Virus record (IMG/VR): IMGVR_UViG_3300043409_000928
Coordinates: 1 to 64,000 of that record
Reading direction: 5' to 3' (one strand)
DNA length: 64,000 nt
The translations under genes and the position numbers were made by a program. Positions 2,609-45,146 of the stretch are shown one piece after another (position 1 is the stretch's first letter; each line of letters starts with the position of its first letter). The notes beneath the pieces were generated by a model. It did not search any database, had not been told where the DNA came from, and was given only the letters and a program-made list of their open reading frames with translations.

Positions 2609-3709
2609 TTATAGGTCCTGGTTAATTTTGGTGGTTTGGCTCTGTCTAAAGTTAGATTTTTCAGGATGGCAGTGTTTAAAGCAGGCAACCAACTGCTGGT
2701 CAGTTCCTTGACTGTTATAAATCCAGTCAAATCCATTGTTGACTATTTGTTTAACTGTGTGATCCGCATTGGCCACTAGGTCAGCTTCTGTTAGGCCAGC
2801 ATTGGTTAATTGTTTTACAAAGTCAGGATAGCGATGGTCAAATGTTTTCTGGAATGACATTATTCCAATAAAGCAACAGGGTGCCACTGACCAGTTACCG
2901 CCAATATAAATCTGTCGAAGGCGTAGGCTATCGCAATTGTTTGCAGGGTCTGGCAATGGTAATGTTTCAACCAGTGGAGCAATTGCCTGCGGTAATTGAC
3001 CGCGTTTTATTGCTGATTCCTTAGACTGTAATTCTCTAACAGGAATGGTTCTGCCAATTTTAACAGGACTAGTTGATGCAGGCTTTAACCAGTGTGTCGC
3101 TTCTCCATTCTTATCTAGCGCAGGTACATTGTCCCTGTCAGTGTGTCTGGCGCTAAATTGTGAGAAGCCTAGTTCAATGGACAGTTGTTTACATGCATCT
3201 ACTTGGTGTTCGTTGTGTTCAAATATTGTCATGGTCCAATTGGCCGTTCCACCTGCTGACATAAATGCCTGTGCATTTTCTAATATTTGATTCCAGTTGG
3301 TTTGTCTGCGGTAAAGATGATGAGTGTCTTCTAGTCCATCAAGTGCAAAGTTAACCGCAGGCCTGAACTGTGCAAGCCTGCGCCACCATTCAGCGGTCCT
3401 TGCACTTCCATTTGTGTTAATTATTATTGACCCACCGGGACTTGCATTGTAAAAGTATTCAACAATTTCCACTGCATCTTTATTGGTAATGAAATCTCCA
3501 ACTGTTCCATTGAGCAGATAGCTTGTAATACCAACAAGATCTTCCGCGGGCAAGTTTTGTTTTACGCTGGACAAGGACCATGTGTCATTGGTTGAAATGT
3601 TAGGATGTTCAAAGTAGCTGGCTGTGGGATACCTGGCACATTGCGGACATACTGAATTGCATAGCGCACTAATTTCCAAGTGCAAGGATGTTATGTCATT
3701 CCATTTCAT
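2609..3709 (-). CDS. Radical SAM protein with C-terminal Cys cluster (SPASM/twitch-like)
   Basis: CNSVCPQC; FALDG; C-terminal C...PCC...CxxxC. Confidence 0.85.
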   Translation of the reverse strand: MKWNDITSLHLEISALCNSVCPQCARYPTASYFEHPNISTNDTWSLSSVKQNLPAEDLVGITSYLLNGTVGDFITNKDAVEIVEYFYNASPGGSIIINTNGSARTAEWWRRLAQFRPAVNFALDGLEDTHHLYRRQTNWNQILENAQAFMSAGGTANWTMTIFEHNEHQVDACKQLSIELGFSQFSARHTDRDNVPALDKNGEATHWLKPASTSPVKIGRTIPVRELQSKESAIKRGQLPQAIAPLVETLPLPDPANNCDSLRLRQIYIGGNWSVAPCCFIGIMSFQKTFDHRYPDFVKQLTNAGLTEADLVANADHTVKQIVNNGFDWIYNSQGTDQQLVACFKHCHPEKSNFRQSQTTKINQDL

Positions 3710-21173: not shown

Positions 21174-21258
21174 TGGTGGAGTATCCTGGGATCGAACCAG
21201 GCGTGCCCGAAGGCGGCGGATTTACAGTCCACTGCATCACCATTGATGCTTCTACTCC
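21174..21258 (-). tRNA. tRNA-Tyr(GTA)
   Basis: CTGTAAA loop; long variable arm. Confidence 0.93.
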
Positions 21259-28099: not shown

Positions 28100-29581
28100 T
28101 TATAACGACATTAATAGTTGTATGTACTCGGTCAGCCGCTTGTCTTTTGCTGTGACCAGTTCAAAACGAGTCCATTTATTTTTATTTTCTTTTAAAAATC
28201 TATCTTCACTGAATCCAAGTTGAAGTAATTGCAGTATTGACCATGATCCGTGATAGGCATTAGTGGTCAGATTTATCTCCGTTATTGTTTCTTTAAGAAA
28301 TTTGCTAGTTTCTTTAAAACTCCAATAATCGTTATGCCAATTTCCACGATCTTGTTTGATAGGAAAAAAGTAACCGTATTTTTCTTTTTCTTTTTCAAAC
28401 TCACTTGGATTTCGAATCAATGATGTTGTATCGTCGGTAGCCATCATACCCAGGCAATGCCAGGAAATATTGTACAGGTTATTATCATTGAACCAGTGTG
28501 CTGTGCTCTTGATACTTTCTCTAGTGTCACCGGGTAGTCCAATGATAAAACTTAGTGTCTGGTGTATCTTGCCTTTCCAGATATTATGATAAAGTTCTGG
28601 TATATACTCTCGGGCTCGTTTCCCACTCCAACCTTTGCCTATACTGGCCGATGCTTGTTCTCCTAGTGTTTCAATACCATGAAACGTGCTTATCATTCCA
28701 GTTTCTTGCAGTATGTGAGGAACGTCGTCAAATCGCTCCAGTAGGTCGGCTCGTATATAAGATGTAAACTTAATTTTGAATGGTAAACTAGTAATCATGT
28801 CATGCCAAGCTTTCATCTTGTATTCTGTATCGTTGAAAGTGTCGCATATAACGTAGTACAGTTGTGTACCAAAGTTTTCATAGTTACTCAACATCTCTTC
28901 TTTGACCAAGTCAAAGCTTCTAAGGTAGTCTAGCTTTCCTCGACCTAATAATAGGTGATTACAAAATTTACACTTGAAGATACATCCTCGACTTATTTCA
29001 ACTGGTAGTGCTTCGCCTGGTAATATTGCATCTTGTTTGACAAATCTAAAATTGTCAGTTTCAATGTTAAAGTTTTCATGTATTGGTACTGAGTAAACTT
29101 TATATGTTTGACTTGTAATTCTTGTGTTCTCTAATGTATAAGCAGGCTCATCACCGTGTCCTGAGATATGCTTCAGGACATCTACAAATATATCTTCACC
29201 ATATTTTGAAACAACTGAATGAATATTTTGTATTGTTGAGAGTGTCAATCCTGAAAGACCGTAGCCACCAAATATTAATTTTAGATTTGGATATTTTGCT
29301 GTAATGTGATTCAAAGCCAGTGTAAAACTTGCTGTAAATTGCATCTGACCAACGGTAGGTGTAAGGAATGTTGTACTGACACCCAGTACTAATGTGTCAT
29401 TGGAAACAAATTTTTCCAGTGCTGCCACAAGTTGATCATAAGAAAAATAAACCACATGATCAATAACTTGTGCTGTGTATCCGGCTTGCCTTACTGAGTG
29501 AGCAATTTTATATGCGCCCAGAGTACGATACATTGTAATGTTACTAACGTCTGGTCCAGTGTTAAGAATAACAACATCCAT
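28100..29581 (-). CDS. B12-binding radical SAM protein (class B methyltransferase-like)
   Basis: N-terminal B12 domain (GVSTTF, IFGG, GE); SRGCIFKCKFC; GIET; IIGLPGDT. Confidence 0.85.
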   Translation of the reverse strand: MDVVILNTGPDVSNITMYRTLGAYKIAHSVRQAGYTAQVIDHVVYFSYDQLVAALEKFVSNDTLVLGVSTTFLTPTVGQMQFTASFTLALNHITAKYPNLKLIFGGYGLSGLTLSTIQNIHSVVSKYGEDIFVDVLKHISGHGDEPAYTLENTRITSQTYKVYSVPIHENFNIETDNFRFVKQDAILPGEALPVEISRGCIFKCKFCNHLLLGRGKLDYLRSFDLVKEEMLSNYENFGTQLYYVICDTFNDTEYKMKAWHDMITSLPFKIKFTSYIRADLLERFDDVPHILQETGMISTFHGIETLGEQASASIGKGWSGKRAREYIPELYHNIWKGKIHQTLSFIIGLPGDTRESIKSTAHWFNDNNLYNISWHCLGMMATDDTTSLIRNPSEFEKEKEKYGYFFPIKQDRGNWHNDYWSFKETSKFLKETITEINLTTNAYHGSWSILQLLQLGFSEDRFLKENKNKWTRFELVTAKDKRLTEYIQLLMSL

Positions 29582-29627
29582 TTACTTTTATTCCTTGAAA
29601 ATTTAGTGGCTGTGTTACTTATTGTAA

Positions 29628-29655
29628 TGGCTCCAGTGGCTGGGATCGAACTCAG
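29628..29655 (-). pseudogene. tRNA 3'-end remnant
   Basis: CTGAGTTCGATCCCAGCCACTGGAGCCA: T-arm, acceptor strand and CCA only. Confidence 0.65.
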
Positions 29656-29668
29656 GCTGAGAAGTATA

Positions 29669-29744
29669 TGGCTGGCAAACCTGGGCTCGAACCAGGGACA
29701 TTTCGGTTAACAGCCGAACGCTCTACCAACTGAGCTATATGCCA
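29669..29744 (-). tRNA. tRNA-Asn(GTT)
   Basis: CTGTTAA loop; G73. Confidence 0.95.
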
Positions 29745-29760
29745 ATAATAAATTTAATTC

Positions 29761-29890
29761 ACTTTATAGGTGCTCTCTGTGACGCTTGAATTCACGGTAG
29801 CCCTGCTCTTCCTGGCACCTCTTGACCTGCTCGAGACTAGTCAAGTGCAGTGTTGTTCCAGTGTAGCTACTCAGAAAGCACGTATAAAGT
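29761..29890 (-). ncRNA. Stem-closed ncRNA candidate
   Basis: ACTTTATACGTGCTTTCTG...CAGAGAGCACCTATAAAGT. Confidence 0.5.
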
Positions 29891-30088
29891 GTCCGGCTAC
29901 TCACACCACATGAGCCCCGGACTGAGCGGTTACTCTGTCCATAACATTTTTCTTATGGGATGGCGTTATACCACACCCCAGGCAGTTTCCAGTATCCCAT
30001 ATAGTGGGACTGTGAGGTCAGGTCCTAGTGTACCCCCTGTTCTCTCGTTTCAGGGACGCTGTTTTATAACGCAAAACAGTAAACCGGG
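29890..30088 (-). ncRNA. Structured ncRNA candidate, copy A
   Basis: Shares ordered motifs with 32545-32745. Confidence 0.6.
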
Positions 30089-30322
30089 TTATTTAATTTT
30101 ACGCATATAGTTTTTTACATTTATTTCGCCTGAATTAAATTCAAGCAATGCAGTTACCGGTGCGTTAAATTGTTCTGTCTTTCCATCATTCCTATGCTGG
30201 CTTGCTAGTTCTCTTGCTCGAGCAGATGCCATAAGAATCAGATTAAACTTGTTTCCGCCTGCATTTTCAATGCATACCTCCACATCAATTTCTGTGCCGC
30301 GACTTAGTGATTTAGAATGCAT
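30089..30322 (-). CDS. rpoZ: RNA polymerase omega subunit homolog
   Basis: NKFNLILMASARAREL...PVTALLEF..GEI. Confidence 0.8.
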   Translation of the reverse strand: MHSKSLSRGTEIDVEVCIENAGGNKFNLILMASARARELASQHRNDGKTEQFNAPVTALLEFNSGEINVKNYMRKIK

Positions 30323-30348
30323 TGTTTGCCTTTGTTGTTAACTACTCA

Positions 30349-30422
30349 TGGAGCGGGATAAGAGAATCGAACTCTTGACCGAAGATTGGAAATCTGCTGT
30401 TTTACCATTAAACTAATCCCGC
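30349..30422 (-). tRNA. tRNA-Gly(TCC)
   Basis: TTTCCAA loop; U73. Confidence 0.95.
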
Positions 30423-30955
30423 CAATGCACACCACCTACCTGTGTCAAACGTAATGCTATGCTGACTCTGGTATCAGTTACGCCTGATACGTTATGTAGA
30501 ATATTCGAGTGAAGCATCACCCATTTTCTTAACGGCACTATAGTCGAATAACATTTTTCGAGGTCGTCAAACACAGTTGTATTTGCTATGCTAGCTTTTC
30601 TAATTAAAGGAAATCCCTTTTCTATGAACCAATTTGTCTGAACATCTATGCCCCCTTGATCCAGGATATAAAAAATAGTAGTTTCACCTGCCGCGTCTGT
30701 GTGAGGAGCTTTAGTTCCGTATGGGGGGAGAATTTCTTGAATAGAACTGTCACTTAACTGGTAACCATCCAGTTGAGGCACAATATTTGCTGTTATCCAA
30801 TCTTTCATTTTTGTTGACTGCCTGTATTTCATAAAACACTGTTGTCTAGCATAGTATTGAGAAGACAGTGAAATACAGGAATATGCGTCTTGTTCTAGAT
30901 CATATGGTAAGGGTGGATAATCTAATTCTTTATAAAAATCTTCAGGACTAAACAT
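30413..30955 (-). CDS. 2OG-Fe(II)-like DSBH protein
   Basis: PHTD ... ILHNV ... R; stop codon lies inside tRNA-Gly. Confidence 0.6.
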   Translation of the reverse strand: MFSPEDFYKELDYPPLPYDLEQDAYSCISLSSQYYARQQCFMKYRQSTKMKDWITANIVPQLDGYQLSDSSIQEILPPYGTKAPHTDAAGETTIFYILDQGGIDVQTNWFIEKGFPLIRKASIANTTVFDDLEKCYSTIVPLRKWVMLHSNILHNVSGVTDTRVSIALRLTQVGGVHWRD

Positions 30956-30977
30956 TACTTTTTCTCCGTTTTAAACT

Positions 30978-31054
30978 TGGTCGGAGTACTAGGATTCGAA
31001 CCTAGGACCTCATCGTCCCAAACGATGCGAACTACCGGGCTGTTCTACACTCCG
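30978..31054 (-). tRNA. tRNA-Pro(TGG)
   Basis: TTTGGGA loop. Confidence 0.95.
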
Positions 31055-31061
31055 ACATAAC

Positions 31062-31136
31062 TGGTTGCAGGGGATGGATTCGAACCACCGATCTTCAGCT
31101 TATGAGACTGACGAGTTGCCACTTCTCTACCCCGCG
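31062..31136 (-). tRNA. tRNA-Met(CAT), initiator-like
   Basis: C1:A72 mismatch; CTCATAA. Confidence 0.9.
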
Positions 31137-31155
31137 ATAACTTACTAACTTTAAC

Positions 31156-31231
31156 TGGTGCCGCTTGTCGGATTCGAACTGACCACCTGCCGCTTACAAG
31201 GCGGCTGCTCTACCAAATGAGCTAAAGCGGC
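31156..31231 (-). tRNA. tRNA-Thr(TGT)
   Basis: CTTGTAA loop. Confidence 0.95.
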
Positions 31232-31260
31232 GAAACTTTTATAACCTTACTTATGTGTGC

Positions 31261-31335
31261 TGGTGCGCGGTGAGAGTTTCGAACTCCCGACCCTCTCGGT
31301 GTAAACGAGACGCTCTACCACTGAGCTAACCGCGC
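31261..31335 (-). tRNA. tRNA-Val(TAC)
   Basis: TTTACAC loop. Confidence 0.95.
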
Positions 31336-31345
31336 CGTTGATTTA

Positions 31346-31786
31346 TTAATCACCTAGATATTCGTAATTGGTTGACTCAGTGTTTTCTCTAAAAACAATA
31401 GCACCATTTTTTGTATGAAACCTTTTGGCCATCTCTGTTTTAGGACTCAGTGTAACAAATCTTTTAATATGTGTCTTGTGCTGTTGTATATGCTTCACTG
31501 CATCAAATATCAACTGTTTACCAGCGCCTGGCTTGTAACTCCAGATTGTATAAAATACTGCTGTGTCTGGTTCCTCTGAACTTTCAAACAATTGATCTTC
31601 GCTGGTGGGAATTCCAATTTGGTAACTCACACAAGTAATGGCTCGTGCTATATCATTTTCATCTCTTAAAACAAAAATGTCTTTGTTATCGCCCATGCGC
31701 TCTACAGTAGGAATATGCGGGCGTACTGGATCGTCCTTGAGATATTCTGCAAGTTTTTCACTTAGATTTTGAAGAAGGTATAACAT
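31346..31786 (-). CDS. Conserved phage protein, GNAT-like fold
   Basis: DDPVRP, AVFYTIWS..GAG, FVTLSP. Confidence 0.7.
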   Translation of the reverse strand: MLYLLQNLSEKLAEYLKDDPVRPHIPTVERMGDNKDIFVLRDENDIARAITCVSYQIGIPTSEDQLFESSEEPDTAVFYTIWSYKPGAGKQLIFDAVKHIQQHKTHIKRFVTLSPKTEMAKRFHTKNGAIVFRENTESTNYEYLGD

Positions 31787-31961
31787 CAGAGTTACTTAGT
31801 CGTTTATAATTGTTATTGCTATCATCTTTGATAACTGCTTCGGCTTGGTTCTCACCTTCAGCCTTTTTCTTTTTTCCAAACGCCAATTCCCAATTGCTTG
31901 TAAATGTATCTTCATCTACACTCTTTGGTCTTGGCGCGGATCCTTTGCCAGCTTCTTGCAT
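31758..31961 (-). CDS. Small conserved phage protein
   Basis: GKGSAPRP...NWELAFG. Confidence 0.6.
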   Translation of the reverse strand: MQEAGKGSAPRPKSVDEDTFTSNWELAFGKKKKAEGENQAEAVIKDDSNNNYKRLSNSDVIPSSKSK

Positions 31962-31982
31962 ACTAACTTTCCTTTAAAATAG

Positions 31983-32058
31983 TGGTGGAGGTGACAAGGA
32001 TCGAACTTGCGACATCCAGCTTGCAAAGCTGGCGCTCTCCCAACTGAGCTACACCCCC
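31983..32058 (-). tRNA. tRNA-Ala(TGC)
   Basis: G3-U70; TTTGCAA. Confidence 0.95.
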
Positions 32059-32076
32059 AAAAATTTTATGATTTGC

Positions 32077-32164
32077 ACCATAGAAAAACACACTCAAGTC
32101 CGCGGCACGGAAGGCACTATACCCGCGATGGCTTTTGACCAGGCCTAGTGTGTTTATCTATAGT
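32077..32164 (-). ncRNA. Stem-closed ncRNA candidate
   Basis: ACTATAGATAAACACACT...AGTGTGTTTTTCTATGGT, near-identical stem to 19656-19788. Confidence 0.55.
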
Positions 32165-32165
32165 T

Positions 32166-32273
32166 AGCATATTGAAACACACTATACAACAGGTTTAGGT
32201 CTGCTTCTGTATCCTGCTACGGCCGAGTATGAAGTTATCTCTGGACCTATGCCGTAATGTGTTTTAATATGCT
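32166..32273 (-). ncRNA. Stem-closed ncRNA candidate
   Basis: AGCATATTAAAACACATT...AGTGTGTTTCAATATGCT. Confidence 0.55.
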
Positions 32274-32460
32274 CTGCGAACCCCGGTGGTAATTGTAGTG
32301 CATCCTCTCCCGGGTTACCCCAGTACGACCTCACCTTCCACCCACTTCCCGGCAGGTTCCGTTAACGCATTGCCAGCGGCCTTTTGGTTCGAAGACTACC
32401 ACCCGTGGTTGTCACACCACTTCTCATCCTGCGGGTCACAGTATCCGACGACACTCGGAA
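32272..32460 (-). ncRNA. GC-rich structured ncRNA candidate
   Basis: CTGTGACCC/GGGTTCGCAG and GGTGGTAGT/ATTACCACC long-range stems. Confidence 0.5.
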
Positions 32461-32464
32461 CGTC

Positions 32465-32540
32465 TGGTTGCGGGGCTTGGATTTGAACCAAGGATGGCAA
32501 TGGCTTATGAGACCACGCTGGTGACCAGGCCCTCCCCGCG
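32465..32540 (-). tRNA. tRNA-Met(CAT), initiator-like, aberrant D arm
   Basis: C1:A72; CTCATAA; CCA. Confidence 0.8.
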
Positions 32541-32544
32541 ATTA

Positions 32545-32745
32545 GGATTAAGCTACTGGTTTCCACACCAGCCCTTAAATTGAGCAGTTACTCTGTCCAT
32601 CTCATTTATTCAAAGTCTGTGTGCAGTTGAGATTCTGCCTATCAGAGTCTGCGAGGGTAGTTTCCAGCCTCACGCTTACGGTTTTCTGCCACCGGATCTC
32701 TATCGCTAATCAAACGCTATTTTAACGAAAATAGTAACGGGATAG
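32545..32745 (-). ncRNA. Structured ncRNA candidate, copy B
   Basis: Shares ordered motifs with 29890-30088. Confidence 0.6.
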
Positions 32746-32870
32746 ATGGGCTCAGTTACAAACTGATTTAATGCTCCCTGCTCGGCGTTTTGACTTGCAT
32801 CCTTTTCAGGCTGACCTTCAAGGTCCATTTAATGCGTCCTGCTTTGCGTTCTGGAACCACCCTAAACTCT

Positions 32871-32899
32871 ATTATAGCACCAATCAACGTGAGTGTCAA
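32871..32899 (-). promoter_or_regulatory. sigma70 promoter (internal)
   Basis: TTGACA-17-TATAAT. Confidence 0.8.
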
Positions 32900-32913
32900 T
32901 TGGTGCCAAATCT

Positions 32914-32988
32914 TGGCGACTCGTGGGAGAATCGAACTCCCGTAAGCGGATAGACAATCCGCAGTAATAACCTCTATACGAACGAGCC
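32914..32988 (-). tRNA. tRNA-Asp(GTC)
   Basis: TTGTCTA loop; G73. Confidence 0.92.
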
Positions 32989-32995
32989 TAATTTC

Positions 32996-33080
32996 TGGTG
33001 CGACTGGCCGGAATCGAACCGGCACGCCCTTCAGCGAGAGATTTTAAGTCTCTTGTGTCTACCGATTTCACCACAGTCGC
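32996..33080 (-). tRNA. tRNA-Leu(TAA)
   Basis: CTTAAAA loop; long variable arm. Confidence 0.95.
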
Positions 33081-33083
33081 AAT

Positions 33084-33300
33084 ACCATATGTAAAATTAC
33101 AAAGGAACTCCACTTACCTTGCAGGACCGTCTCCTGCTACTTCTGCTTCGTCATTACGCTCTAGTAAATCCTACCGTGCCATTTGGTGATGTTGCCATCC
33201 CTCAGCTTTCATATACACTACATTGAGCCAGCCCGTCAGCTGGTTATACTCAATACAGGTACCTAGCAGTACTAGTAACCTTTATAACTTTACATATGGT
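33084..33300 (-). ncRNA. Stem-closed ncRNA candidate (~215 nt)
   Basis: ACCATATGTAAAGTTATAAAGG...CCTTTGTAATTTTACATATGGT. Confidence 0.55.
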
Positions 33301-33371
33301 ACTCGATAGGAGAATCGAACTCCTCTTTCCGGCGTGAAAGGCCAGCGTCCTAACCGATAGACGAATCGAGC
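33297..33371 (-). tRNA. tRNA-Glu(TTC)
   Basis: CTTTCAC loop. Confidence 0.95.
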
Positions 33372-33386
33372 ACAAATGCCACCAAA

Positions 33387-33399
33387 TTTTTAAAGAACA
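33387..33399 (-). promoter_or_regulatory. boxA-like antitermination element
   Basis: TGTTCTTTAAAAA vs rrn boxA TGCTCTTTAACA. Confidence 0.6.
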
Positions 33400-33430
33400 A
33401 TCACTTCAACTTTCGCTGTAGTGTTTGGTT

Positions 33431-33566
33431 ATTATATACGGACAATGCCGTAATGTCAACCGTTTTCTAACTTTCTTTTGTTGTATTTCTACAACAACTT
33501 TCAAACTGTTTCTACTGTATTGCTACAGTATGCCACTAGTATATGCTATCTACTGATTCCTGTCAA
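33431..33566 (-). promoter_or_regulatory. Tandem sigma70 promoters, each with an upstream palindrome
   Basis: TTGACA-17-TATAAT (33431-33459); TTGACA-17-TATACT (33538-33566); TGTTGTATTTCTACAACA at 33479 and 33586. Confidence 0.8.
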
Positions 33567-33607
33567 CAACTATCTGCCTTTATTTTGTTGTATTTCTACA
33601 ACAAACT

Positions 33608-33681
33608 TGGAGCGGGATAGGAGAATCGAACTCCTGACTAAACCTTGGCAAGGTTTCGTTTGACCATTAAACTAATCCCGC
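33608..33681 (-). tRNA. tRNA-Gly(GCC)
   Basis: TTGCCAA loop; U73. Confidence 0.95.
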
Positions 33682-33697
33682 ATAACCTTTCCACAAT

Positions 33698-33728
33698 AAA
33701 AAAACCCTGGAGTTTTTATTTCCAGGGC
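33698..33728 (-). terminator. Attenuator terminator ahead of tRNA cluster 2
   Basis: CCCTGGA-AATAAAAAC-TCCAGGG-TTTTTTT. Confidence 0.85.
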
Positions 33729-33751
33729 CTGTAATCTCACTATGCGTAGAG

Positions 33752-33817
33752 TTACGGCCTCGGAGTATCCTCTGTGGCTGGTCCTGTATTACCTGGTAAC
33801 AATTTTGCATTTAACAT
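33752..33817 (-). CDS. Leader (attenuator) peptide 2, 21 aa
   Basis: MLNAKLLPGNTGPATEDTPRP; ATG 6 nt after TATAAT (leaderless); 3' end pairs with terminator arm. Confidence 0.75.
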   Translation of the reverse strand: MLNAKLLPGNTGPATEDTPRP

Positions 33818-33823
33818 AGTACC

Positions 33824-33852
33824 ATTATATATCCTTTTAAACAAGAAGTCAA
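33824..33852 (-). promoter_or_regulatory. sigma70 promoter of tRNA cluster 2 leader
   Basis: TTGACT-17-TATAAT. Confidence 0.85.
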
Positions 33853-33855
33853 TGG

Positions 33856-34518
33856 TTATGGCGAAATAAATTGAGATTTTATTTTTTGCCAAACACCGTC
33901 AGTTGATCCAGTAGCACAATCTACAATGCGGGCAGTGACAGTGACTCGCCAACCTGCACCTTGGATAACATGATGGGGGAGATTGGTACGAACCAACGCA
34001 CTTGGCGTATTAGTTGTTGATTCAAAAATAACAGGAGGAACACCATCCCAATCAATTTTACCTGCCTTCAAGTCCATGACCCAAGGATACGTGTAGTCTA
34101 GAATTTTAGTTCCACCAAGGTTGATATCATAGTCATTGTATCCATCACCTGTATCCAGGAACCAGCGTATTGCACCGGCGCCTGTTGTGAGATCATAGAA
34201 ATTTATTCTAGCCTCAAGTTTGCCTGCATCCACATGTACGTTCTTATCAAACAAGTTTGGGCAAACAATAAAAATACCCATAGTCTCTGCACGTAGCCCC
34301 AATGGATTTAAAAATGCATCTGCTACTGCCCGTGTAGCATCCAGCTTACAATCTAGGGTGTGTTCTGGATTAAAATACAGGCGTTGATCATTTTTGTGAC
34401 GCTCCAACAACAACTGTACTACCCCACTTTGCAATGCTTCCTTATCCTCTTCTGGCAATGTTAGTGTTAAAGGAATAAAGTAATCGGCGTTGGGTGTTGG
34501 TAGTGCAGTAATATCCAT
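33856..34518 (-). CDS. 2OG-Fe(II)-like DSBH protein
   Basis: VHVD ... RTNLPH ... WRVT; TAAATA-4nt-ATG. Confidence 0.6.
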   Translation of the reverse strand: MDITALPTPNADYFIPLTLTLPEEDKEALQSGVVQLLLERHKNDQRLYFNPEHTLDCKLDATRAVADAFLNPLGLRAETMGIFIVCPNLFDKNVHVDAGKLEARINFYDLTTGAGAIRWFLDTGDGYNDYDINLGGTKILDYTYPWVMDLKAGKIDWDGVPPVIFESTTNTPSALVRTNLPHHVIQGAGWRVTVTARIVDCATGSTDGVWQKIKSQFISP

Positions 34519-43029: not shown

Positions 43030-43375
43030 AAGAAACCCGCCGAAGCGGGTTCTGAGTTTCTGTTACGAGGTATGTCTTACCCTAAGTGGCTGTTAGGCCG
43101 CTAATGCGAACTGTGAGTCGTTTGCTTTTACTTTATTTCTTCTTTTTACATCGTTGCTGATGTGCTGTCCACTTGTTTACTTGTTGCCCTGTCGAAACCA
43201 TGACTGGCCCATCAAAAAAGGACTATAAAGAATACTACTATCAGTACGATAGATAGAACTCCACATACGAGTTGATACAGATATTCACTATCCATACAAT
43301 CCCCTTTTGGTGGACCAGGCGGGAGTCGAACCCGCGTCCAGAACACTTTTCTCTTTGCTTCATACAGCAATAACT
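43030..43375 (-). ncRNA. ssrA: Circularly permuted two-piece tmRNA
   Basis: T-arm/CCA piece (ends 43308) precedes GGGCCAG piece (starts 43210); G3-U70; tag ANDSQFALAA at 43093-43125; promoter TTGACC-17-TATACT at 43379-43407; terminator at 43030-43051. Confidence 0.92.
43212..43295 (-). CDS. 27-aa hydrophobic peptide inside tmRNA intervening segment
   Basis: MDSEYLYQLVCGVLSIVLIVVFFIVLF; AAGGGG RBS. Confidence 0.5.
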   Translation of the reverse strand: MDSEYLYQLVCGVLSIVLIVVFFIVLF

Positions 43376-43403
43376 TACAGTATATACTTATTTGATCAGC
43401 AGG

Positions 43404-45146
43404 TCAAATCAATTTAAATAGGCCAAACGCACTGCCATTTTCGTTGCTGTATGCCAGATAGTTGACATTAGAATTTCCTGGAATAGAACTTGAACCAAAC
43501 CAGTATGATGCTCGTTCTTGTTCTGTAACAACTGCCCATGTACCGTCACCATCAATTACTTCGCCATCGCTGTCTCTATTCAGTACCCACTTTTGTGTAA
43601 TTGTAGATTCTGAGTTATACCACCATACTGATTCTGTTGGTACTAGTGGCTCAACAGTTCCTGAATAAATTCTATTCTCTGCGGCAAAGTATATGTTGGT
43701 TCCAAACTCATTTGTAATTCTTCTTTGGTAGCCTTCGTCTCCTGGAATACCGTTTGCATCTTCTAATAATTCTGCTGTTTCGAGTCTGCTCAATCCTTGA
43801 TTGAATTTTACTACCTTGCCATCTCCTCCAATCATTGGTTTCAAATCTGTTCCTACTTTACAAATATAAAATTCTGGAGCAACTGATGCTGGGACTAAAT
43901 TATTGGTTGTATCAAACGAAAATCCATTTAGTTCAGCACTTGGAATTGACAGTATATGATTGTATCCTCTATGCAATGTAATTTCAGGATTCCTGTTTAG
44001 GTAAACATCTTTACGACCATTGACCACTTGTTCACTTTGTACTCCTGTCACAGCCCAACAGTTTCTATCTGCAATCCATACAAAGTTAAAATTTGTCACT
44101 GGAGGATCAATGATTGCTTCGGCTGTGGCATCACCACCATCTTGTTCGTTACCAGAAATTGTGTTTGCGTTATATCCTATGAACTTTCCGCAATAGTCGT
44201 ACAATGGTTCTAGTTGAGCAAAGAATGGATCTTGTGGAGTCAGTGCCGCAATGGCCAAGGCATAAACATCTGGGCCAACAATGCTTGGCCAAATATTATT
44301 ATTTCTTATACCGTTAATATCTGCAGGATAGTTTGCTGTTTTTCCTAGGTTAGATACGATCGACTGTGCTTGTGCTGTTGCATCTTTTAAGTTGGGACTA
44401 TCAATAGGCGGGTATGGAGGATTCCATTTAACAGCGGGCGCAGATGCTATTGTTACTGGCTGTACGTCGGTGGTCTTATACGGCTTGCCAGTTTTTAAAT
44501 TTGTTTTGTGTCTAAAGTCAGGAAACAACTGTCTGTTGATTGATTTGTCAAGTGCTTTCTTAACTCCTTGTAATCTTTTAGTTAACTGGTCAATTTTTTG
44601 ACCTGGAATATTGGCCATCTTCCCGCCGTGCTTTTGAATACTACCAAGTATACTGCTTGGATTGTAAGAACCTGTATTAAGGCCGCCGTCGCCGTTTAAG
44701 CACAATTGTGGTTTTGTCAATCGACCAATGTCATTTAAGATTGCATTCATTTCAGCAAACTCGGCATCAATGATCTGGCTCAACACATCAGGGATTTTTG
44801 GCGCCTTGAGAGGAATTTTACATAGCCCATCTAACGCCAATAAACTTTGCACTTCTGCAATTGCACTGTTTACTCTGCCTAGTATTTCTTTTGCGCCAGA
44901 TAGATCTTCTAGTGCCTTTAACTGATCTTTGATGCCGCGCAGTTCATTTTGTAAATCTTTGATCGTAGGCAAGTCAGTATTTTCAGAAATTAATGCATCA
45001 AGGTCAAGCTTTATACATAACAAAGGACCTTTGAGCATGTTACTAAGACCACCAAACAGTATGGCACATATGATGTCCTTGATTGGTTTGTTCAAGATGC
45101 CTTTGGTCGCAACCTTAACGCCTGGGATAATTGGGATGTCTGCCAT
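43404..45146 (-). CDS. Putative virion structural (baseplate/tail-region) protein
   Basis: Late promoter TAAGTA; context. Confidence 0.6.
   Translation of the reverse strand: MADIPIIPGVKVATKGILNKPIKDIICAILFGGLSNMLKGPLLCIKLDLDALISENTDLPTIKDLQNELRGIKDQLKALEDLSGAKEILGRVNSAIAEVQSLLALDGLCKIPLKAPKIPDVLSQIIDAEFAEMNAILNDIGRLTKPQLCLNGDGGLNTGSYNPSSILGSIQKHGGKMANIPGQKIDQLTKRLQGVKKALDKSINRQLFPDFRHKTNLKTGKPYKTTDVQPVTIASAPAVKWNPPYPPIDSPNLKDATAQAQSIVSNLGKTANYPADINGIRNNNIWPSIVGPDVYALAIAALTPQDPFFAQLEPLYDYCGKFIGYNANTISGNEQDGGDATAEAIIDPPVTNFNFVWIADRNCWAVTGVQSEQVVNGRKDVYLNRNPEITLHRGYNHILSIPSAELNGFSFDTTNNLVPASVAPEFYICKVGTDLKPMIGGDGKVVKFNQGLSRLETAELLEDANGIPGDEGYQRRITNEFGTNIYFAAENRIYSGTVEPLVPTESVWWYNSESTITQKWVLNRDSDGEVIDGDGTWAVVTEQERASYWFGSSSIPGNSNVNYLAYSNENGSAFGLFKLI

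Follow-up and report, generated by a model that had tools for sequence, protein, structure and literature searches.

Within the tRNA gene arrays of a large uncultured phage, two stretches of about 200 nucleotides resemble each other without being tRNAs, and the question they raise is what kind of gene they represent. The window in which they occur is the 64,000-nucleotide stretch formed by positions 1 to 64,000 of the IMG/VR record IMGVR_UViG_3300043409_000928, whose genome comprises 285,304 bp. An earlier note had placed the two stretches at 29890-30088 and 32545-32745, and had interpreted them as two diverged copies of a structured non-coding RNA with conserved cores and swappable stems, with 5' TTACT able to pair with 3' AGTAA, possibly ribozyme-like or protein-binding and of a family that its author did not recognize. 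The observation itself was confirmed: both stretches exist and the ordered blocks they share are real, although they read on the minus strand, which is the strand of all 30 tRNAs and of the tmRNA. The refined limits are the following:

30088..29883 (minus strand): copy A, the whole RNA (206 nt, A1 subtype), which starts right after the stop codon of the ORF at 30089-30322 and ends in an 8-nt tail before the next conserved RNA.
32743..32541 (minus strand): copy B, the whole RNA (203 nt, B subtype), whose 7-nt tail abuts tRNA-Met (32540..32465).

Is this similarity more than chance? The core 14-mer ATGGACAGAGTAAC occurs exactly twice in the genome, both times in these copies, and a covariance model of the 3' domain finds exactly these two places (E 4.6e-19 and 8.0e-17) and nothing else at E<=1. 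The blocks also recur in other phage contigs of IMG/VR, from which at least 135 distinct members were collected, in two main subtypes that match copies A and B. One qualification concerns the CTGGAAACT(G/A)CC block, which is shared by the two copies of the window but is not family-wide, since most B-type relatives carry a short unrelated loop at that place. Each of the 16 phage records searched, among them eight complete genomes of 162-525 kb, has one or two copies. Hundreds of uncultured large phages carry the RNA inside their tRNA gene arrays.

The next question is whether the family had already been catalogued. A match to Rfam had been named beforehand as the result that would remove its novelty, and none was found: at gathering thresholds the only Rfam 15 hits in the window are tRNAs and the tmRNA, and with permissive filters and E<=10 over 29400-33800 nothing falls on either copy. 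No model hit was obtained for RNase P RNA, group I intron, tmRNA, HDV-like ribozymes, GOLLD, ROOL or Y RNA. In the case of group I introns, in which a P3-P7 pseudoknot core (RF00028) and a split host gene would be expected, the flanking tRNAs are complete. In the case of RNase P RNA, whose P4 helix is formed by a conserved GGAAAGUCC-like strand and an ACAGAA..GGCUUA strand, the GGAAAC block is absent from most B-type members, and the ACAGAG..GCUC stretch folds on itself as a 3-bp hairpin with a covarying closing pair. ARAGORN and Rfam place the tmRNA of this phage at 43031-43421 and find nothing at the two copies. Among cultured relatives, no blastn match was obtained in 50,697 GenBank phages. 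An exact 18-mer scan of 185,579 prokaryote species genomes, aimed at host-encoded homologues, gave 12 matches, of which only one is real, a 3-kb MAG contig at 86.7 bits, while the rest score 12-20 bits.

A protein-coding origin was also considered and rejected. No frame stays open across members, the longest open stretch having a median of about 50 aa and a minimum of 29-31 aa; the AUG-GAC-AGA frame gives peptides of varying length and is shifted by loop indels, and the changes in stems are compensatory. Likewise, no protein gene is consistently adjacent to the RNA: the upstream ORFs differ between members, with an Rpb6/omega-like 77-aa ORF here and a 191-aa coiled-coil ORF elsewhere, neither of which has an informative family.

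If the sequences do not encode a protein, do they encode a fold? In 93 B-type sequences, 92.9% of cells pair, against 35-41% when the partners are slid; 23 pairs change on both sides, and the covariation score is 0.219 against 0.095 in shuffles, with 0 of 500 shuffles reaching it. In the 3' domain of all subtypes, 82% of cells pair against 18-42% slid. Covariation thus supports a chain of helices with three H-type pseudoknots, and a fourth in A-like members, together with a 3-bp hairpin presenting an invariant GUAAC loop and a terminal hairpin with a fixed GG/UAG internal loop. Single-sequence folding gave unremarkable minimum-free-energy z-scores (-1.3 and -1.05), although that method ignores pseudoknots. 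It is important to note that a window-based helix test on non-B members was uninformative because the shuffled controls scored nearly as high, so that the A-type pairings rest on named examples read from the alignment rather than on a formal count. In copy B, the parts are:

32717..32739 (minus strand): 5' pseudoknot PK-C, in which CG at 32739-32738 pairs with CG in the loop of hairpin P2 (32734-32717); the pair of columns 10-27 is CG77/GC9/UG4/AU3 and the P2 pairs covary.
32695..32716 (minus strand): pseudoknot PK-A, a stem CGUU/AGCG whose loop GAU pairs with AUC after the conserved AUAGAG; columns 45-57 are UA71/CG12/AU9.
32679..32694 (minus strand): hairpin Pc (CGGU/ACCG) with the invariant loop GGCAGAAA; it never varies within B, but the equivalent GGU/ACC helix changes to GGC/GCC in C-type members.
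32651..32673 (minus strand): variable hairpin Pd, whose loop here carries CUGGAAACUA; 5 of 6 pairs change on both sides and the loop content is not conserved.
32599..32646 (minus strand): hairpin Pf (UCUG..GCAG / CUGC..CAGA), whose loop AUCUC pairs with GAGAU just 5' of the core (PK-B), the two being joined by the A-rich GAAUAAA; 4 of 5 pairs of the corresponding helix change on both sides, while the Pf stems are invariant.
32582..32598 (minus strand): core GGAC plus a 3-bp hairpin (A-U, G-C, X-Y) with hexaloop GUAACN; X-Y is A.G in most members and AU/UA/GC/CG in 14.
32548..32578 (minus strand): terminal hairpin with an outer stem, the fixed GG/UAG internal loop, an inner stem and a loop with UGG; the covariation score is 0.429 against 0.133 in shuffles, and 0 of 500 reach it.

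In copy A, the corresponding parts are:

30059..30086 (minus strand): PK-C (CG at 30086-30085 with the P2 loop) plus hairpin P2 (30079-30059); the 5' strand/loop pairs in relatives are CGGU/ACCG, CAGU/ACUG, CGGA/UCCG, GGGC/GCCC and GUAG/CUAC.
30035..30058 (minus strand): PK-A, a stem CGU/ACG whose loop CCCUG pairs with CAGGG after AGAGAA; the pairings read from the alignment are CCCUG/CAGGG, GGCA/UGCU, GGCC/GGCU, UUGGC/GCCAG and UUGGU/ACCAG.
29978..30034 (minus strand): Pc (GGU/ACC), which encloses the 5' strand of Pd (CUAGG), a strand that pairs with CCUGG at 29982-29978 and makes the fourth pseudoknot; inside lie UGACC, hairpin Pe and GGAAACUG. The Pd strands are CUAGG/CCUAG, CCAGG/CCUGG, CAGUGC/GCAUUG and UACGAU/AUCGUA.
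29941..29977 (minus strand): short hairpin Pf, whose loop AUAAC pairs with GUUAU just 5' of the core (PK-B), with an A-rich linker between them; AUAAC/GUUAU stands against AUCAC/GUGAU in the sequences labelled L072, L001 and L013.
29924..29940 (minus strand): core GGAC plus the hexaloop hairpin.
29891..29922 (minus strand): terminal hairpin with the GG/UAG internal loop.

The interpretation given in the earlier note was thus only partly supported. A structured non-coding RNA with conserved cores and swappable stems, without a match in Rfam, is in agreement with the data, whereas the proposed closing helix is not supported. Its two strands are complementary in the window, but in relatives the 5' segment varies freely and without compensation (GUGAUC, GGGCGC, GUAGUC, GGUCC) while GUAAC stays fixed; the 5' segment covaries instead with the loop of the first hairpin, and GUAAC sits in the loop of its own 3-bp hairpin. 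A kissing interaction between the P2 loop (CGUUA) and the hexaloop (GUAAC) was also rejected, given that the 3' part of the P2 loop varies (UUAA, UCAA, UAAA, AUAA, UGAA) while the hexaloop stays fixed, and that variants with a changed hexaloop keep CGUUA. The suggestion of a ribozyme-like or protein-binding RNA remains a guess, and nothing here shows catalysis or a partner.

The genomic context gives further indications. All 1,081 tRNAs within 1.5 kb of members lie on the same strand, and none is opposite. In B-type members a tRNA usually ends just before the RNA: in 73 of 93 a tRNA ends 133-150 nt before the core, and in 67 of 93 the next tRNA starts 59-62 nt after the core start. A consensus sigma-70-type promoter (32871..32899, minus strand; TTGACA, 17 nt, TATAAT, with TG; 12 of 12 positions match) is found about 120 nt upstream of copy B, although this is a pattern match only, and no terminator-like site lies on that strand. 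According to the explanation preferred here, which is held with moderate confidence at most, each copy is a gene for a compact, multiply pseudoknotted non-coding RNA of about 205 nt. It would be transcribed by the host polymerase as part of the polycistronic tRNA transcripts of the phage and cut out by the enzymes that mature the neighbouring tRNAs: RNase P, cutting at the next tRNA, would leave the roughly 10-nt A/U-rich tail, and maturation of the 3' end of the preceding tRNA would free the 5' end. A pseudoknot at the 5' end and a long hairpin at the 3' end should make it resistant to exonucleases, and it would therefore accumulate like a tRNA. It would then act in trans through its invariant unpaired nucleotides (AUAGAG, GAAUAAA, GGAC, the GUAAC hexaloop, the GG/UAG loop and the UGG loop), which would form a docking surface for a protein or another RNA of the translation or RNA-processing machinery. 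What the analysis establishes is the family, the fold, the strand and the spacing, whereas transcription, excision, stability and action in trans are inferred, and several helices (Pc, Pf) enter the model without variation that could test them.

The very constant spacing to the next tRNA would also fit a role in cis, as a folding insulator, an exonuclease block or a positioning device for RNase P or RNase E in the tRNA precursor, with no function once released. The position flush with the preceding tRNA and the conserved A/U-rich tail, of the form CUAAUUU, point in the same direction. However, sequence and structure are far more elaborate and conserved than a spacer needs, A-type members often follow a protein gene and precede a non-tRNA RNA instead, the identities of the neighbouring tRNAs vary, and most tRNA junctions in the same arrays lack the element; this reading is considered unlikely. 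A ribozyme, for example a self-cleaving or processing RNA that frees itself or the neighbouring tRNAs, is likewise a doubtful alternative. In its favor, many invariant unpaired nucleotides are held in a knotted fold, the RNA begins within about 6 nt of the CCA end of the preceding tRNA, and the HDV-like theta ribozymes next to phage tRNAs are a precedent (PMC10879173). On the contrary, no known ribozyme family matches at E<=10, the size is larger than that of the small self-cleavers, the pseudoknots are serial instead of forming the nested double pseudoknot (P1, P1.1, P2, P3, P4) of HDV-like ribozymes, which cleave themselves at their 5' edge, host RNase P and RNase E already suffice for such operons, and three B-type members replace the core and otherwise stay intact.

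Another possibility, also considered unlikely, is that the RNA is the protomer of an RNA-only assembly, a smaller counterpart of the ROOL and GOLLD nanocages. The genomic niche, phage tRNA islands, is the same, the RNA has multiple pseudoknots and no associated protein (PMC12286853), and RNAs under 200 nt can form cages (bioRxiv 10.64898/2026.07.01.735769). Nevertheless, no conserved self-complementary loop was found, the one candidate loop-loop pair (P2 loop with the hexaloop) shows no covariation, and the idea has no structural data behind it. A very improbable reading is that the core hairpin mimics helix 44 of 23S rRNA (the L11/GTPase-associated centre) and titrates a ribosomal protein or translation factor. 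E. coli 23S has AGC-GUAAUA-GCU-CA and the family has AGA-GUAACN-GCU-CA, with the same 3-bp stem and hexaloop, but a 12-of-14 match is estimated to be expected about three times by chance in a comparison of this size, the surrounding helices do not resemble helices 42-43, and the model designated R1 does not hit the rRNA fragment. A bolder and rather unlikely possibility is a new class of natural catalytic or self-assembling RNA, a compact four-pseudoknot fold with no relative among known RNA families, that large phages would express together with their tRNAs to act on tRNAs or ribosomes during infection.

Several known systems share part of these features. The theta ribozymes are also structured, pseudoknotted RNAs placed directly beside phage tRNA genes, but they are short nested double pseudoknots with proven cleavage. 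The tmRNA is also encoded by this phage and is a string of H-type pseudoknots matured by tRNA-processing enzymes, as inferred for the present RNA, which has no tRNA-like domain and no conserved tag reading frame. The species 1 and species 2 RNAs of phage T4 (rnaC and rnaD) are small stable RNAs of unknown function lying flush with a tRNA (tRNA-Arg) inside the T4 tRNA cluster, on the same strand, and are a precedent for the explanation preferred here; they are shorter (139 and 119 nt), rnaC ends in a tRNA-like arm, no similarity is seen by eye, and the model R1 finds nothing in the T4 tRNA region at E<=1. The ROOL and GOLLD RNAs (Rfam; PMC12286853) are encoded by phages and prophages, often near tRNA islands, and have elaborate folds with several pseudoknots, no known protein partner and no known function, but they form homo-oligomeric cages, are 3-4 times larger (about 600-800 nt) and show no sequence or model match; oligomerisation of the present RNA is only conjectured. 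Phage tRNA islands already harbour ROOL, GOLLD and the T4 species 1 and 2 RNAs, which are among the best-conserved RNAs whose purpose is still unknown. The same arrays studied here hold at least two further conserved non-tRNA RNAs, so these islands may encode a wider RNA toolkit. The size of the RNA makes it tractable for structure probing, cryo-EM and pull-downs, and it could therefore give a handle on why phages place structured RNAs among their tRNAs. To the RNAs of these islands the present family adds a third, much smaller and very abundant class, confined to uncultured large phages and with an unusually knotted fold of three to four pseudoknots in about 205 nt.

The window is the first 64 kb of a single 285,304-bp virus record with 41.5% G+C, and it carries 30 tRNA genes and a tmRNA, all of them on the minus strand. 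The two stretches singled out in the earlier note lie in the second tRNA cluster and are read on that same strand. The features of the window considered here are the following:
30088..29883, minus strand: copy A of the RNA (refined limits)
32743..32541, minus strand: copy B of the RNA (refined limits)
29760-29881, minus strand: a further conserved RNA of about 120 nt, directly after copy A
32250-32464, minus strand: a conserved non-tRNA element of about 215 nt, just after tRNA-Met
30089-30322, minus strand: a 77-aa ORF ending at the 5′ edge of copy A
32871-32899, 33431-33459, 33538-33566 and 33824-33852, minus strand: four near-perfect sigma-70 consensus promoters
43031-43421, minus strand: the phage-encoded tmRNA
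21177-21258, minus strand: a weak 31st tRNA (33.6 bits), called by Rfam and not reported by ARAGORN
28100-29581 and 2609-3709, minus strand: two radical-SAM ORFs assigned at the level of the superfamily only, one of them bordering the tRNA cluster

The observation made in the earlier note, that of two stretches sharing a series of ordered blocks, holds. On the RNA sense the two copies share, in this order, a 5′ hairpin with a CGUUA-containing loop, the sequence AGCG, a GGAAAC block, a 20-nt block identical at 19 positions around GGACAGAGUAAC, and a terminal GGGCU-hairpin-GUAGC. The core 14-mer occurs exactly twice in the genome.

The two copies belong to a large family. A scan of IMG/VR contigs for the 14-mer gave at least 119 loci, and more than half of these 119 carry the whole downstream signature. 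A second scan, based on an 18-mer specific to copy B and lying outside the core, likewise gave only a lower bound; among 113 B-type copies taken from it, 77 keep the exact core, 33 differ at one or two positions and 3 replace it. These three (the loci L128, L131 and L163) keep the whole B-type body but replace GGACAGAGUAAC by a different 4-bp hairpin (AGUG-UGAAU-CACU), and are either degenerate copies or a functional variant. In all, at least 135 distinct members were extracted, 93 of B-type and 42 others, the latter falling into subtype A1 (like copy A), subtype A2 and more distant forms. B-type and non-B copies co-occur in the window and in at least six other contigs. Rfam 15 gives nothing on either copy, even at E<=10 with permissive filters, and blastn finds nothing in 50,697 GenBank phage records. 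An exact 18-mer scan of one genome for each of 185,579 prokaryote species gave one true member, on a 3-kb MAG contig, while the other 11 were chance matches. The family may be among the 8,495 unnamed candidates described from IMG/VR (PMC10690425). A covariance model of the 3′ domain finds one or two copies in each of 16 phage records, eight of which are complete genomes of 162-525 kb, six with one copy and two with two. With regard to the host, the closest cultured phages share only about 25% identity in one protein, and the phage tmRNA scores as the betaproteobacterial, permuted type, with the tag ANDSQFALAA, which is a weak hint.

The fold was examined on the 93 B-type sequences, for which a structure of 50 pairs in 12 helices was written out. 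In this structure 92.9% of cells pair, against 35-41% when the 3′ partners are slid by 1-3 columns; 23 pairs change on both sides, and the covariation score is 0.219 against 0.095 in shuffles, none of 500 shuffles reaching it. The helices supported by double-sided changes are: P2, the first hairpin; PK-C, in which two nucleotides of the 5′ segment pair with the P2 loop (one pair reads CG in 77 sequences, GC in 9, UG in 4 and AU in 3); PK-A, in which the loop of a CGUU/AGCG stem pairs just after a conserved AUAGAG (UA in 71, CG in 12 and AU in 9); Pd, the variable hairpin; PK-B, in which the loop of hairpin Pf pairs with the 5-6 nt immediately 5′ of GGACAG; and the terminal hairpin. Hairpins Pc and Pf, on the contrary, never vary within B, so that they are neither supported nor contradicted there. 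Across all subtypes (129 sequences) the terminal hairpin covaries strongly, with a score of 0.429 against 0.133. The core also resolves into a 3-bp hairpin, formed by A-U, G-C and a third pair that is A.G in most members and AU, UA, GC or CG in 14, which presents the hexaloop GUAACN. This core hairpin resembles helix 44 of 23S rRNA, but the match is within chance expectation and is regarded only as a lead.

In the non-B alignment the same pseudoknots recur with different sequences. PK-C is found as CGGU/ACCG, CAGU/ACUG, CGGA/UCCG, GGGC/GCCC and GUAG/CUAC; PK-A as CCCUG/CAGGG, GGCA/UGCU, GGCC/GGCU, UUGGC/GCCAG and UUGGU/ACCAG; and PK-B as AUAAC/GUUAU against AUCAC/GUGAU. In these members the Pc helix (GGU/ACC, or GGC/GCC in some) encloses the 5′ strand of Pd, which makes a fourth pseudoknot. 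The non-B pairings are read from the alignment rather than formally counted, since MAFFT shifts registers between subtypes, and a window-based test of them was uninformative. The interpretation offered in the earlier note is only partly supported: the RNA is structured, but the closing helix proposed between the 5′ TTACT and the 3′ AGTAA is not supported. The two segments are complementary in both window copies; in relatives, however, the 5′ linker is free to vary while GUAAC stays fixed. The RNA is instead a chain of knotted modules.

The genomic context is that of tRNA operons. All 1,081 tRNAs found by ARAGORN within 1.5 kb of family members are on the strand of the RNA, and none is opposite. 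In 73 of 93 B-type members a tRNA ends 133-150 nt before the core, that is, a few nucleotides before the RNA, and in 67 of 93 the next tRNA starts 59-62 nt after the core start. A-type members more often follow a protein gene. In the window, the 77-aa ORF that ends at the 5′ edge of copy A has a sub-threshold match to RNA polymerase Rpb6/omega (E 3e-5), and homologous ORFs precede the A-type copies of two other loci, L058 and L078. In ten loci, as in the window, A-type members are followed, at exactly the spacing at which the next tRNA follows B-type members, by another conserved RNA. This RNA of about 120 nt, which in the window sits directly after copy A, is closed by a 10-bp stem and found in 14 loci, in 10 of which it starts exactly 60 nt after the A-type core. 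One arm of its long hairpin resembles the Ro60-binding strand of animal Y RNAs, although Rfam gave no Y_RNA or YrlA hit there and the phage has no TROVE protein. The element of about 215 nt just after tRNA-Met is 71-89% identical in 54 loci, always on the same strand, and sits 149-2173 nt downstream of B-type copies; it has no Rfam match and no significant single-sequence fold. Regarding expression signals, the four promoters interspersed in the tRNA array match the consensus at 11-12 of 12 positions, which suggests several strong host-polymerase units. A perfect one sits about 120 nt upstream of copy B, and no terminator-like site lies on this strand across 29300-34200.

Taken together, what the data show is a conserved, non-coding, highly structured RNA gene embedded in tRNA operons, in which no reading frame is conserved. 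In the absence of expression evidence, the remaining steps are inferred: that the RNA is co-transcribed with the tRNAs and released by the tRNA-maturation enzymes, that it is stable because both ends are locked in structure, and that it acts in trans through its many invariant unpaired nucleotides. A ribozyme, an RNA-only assembly or a purely cis processing element cannot be excluded. The arrangement in tRNA operons is that of the phage T4 species 1 and 2 RNAs, and it is also the niche of ROOL and GOLLD (PMC12286853); none of these is related to this family in sequence or model.
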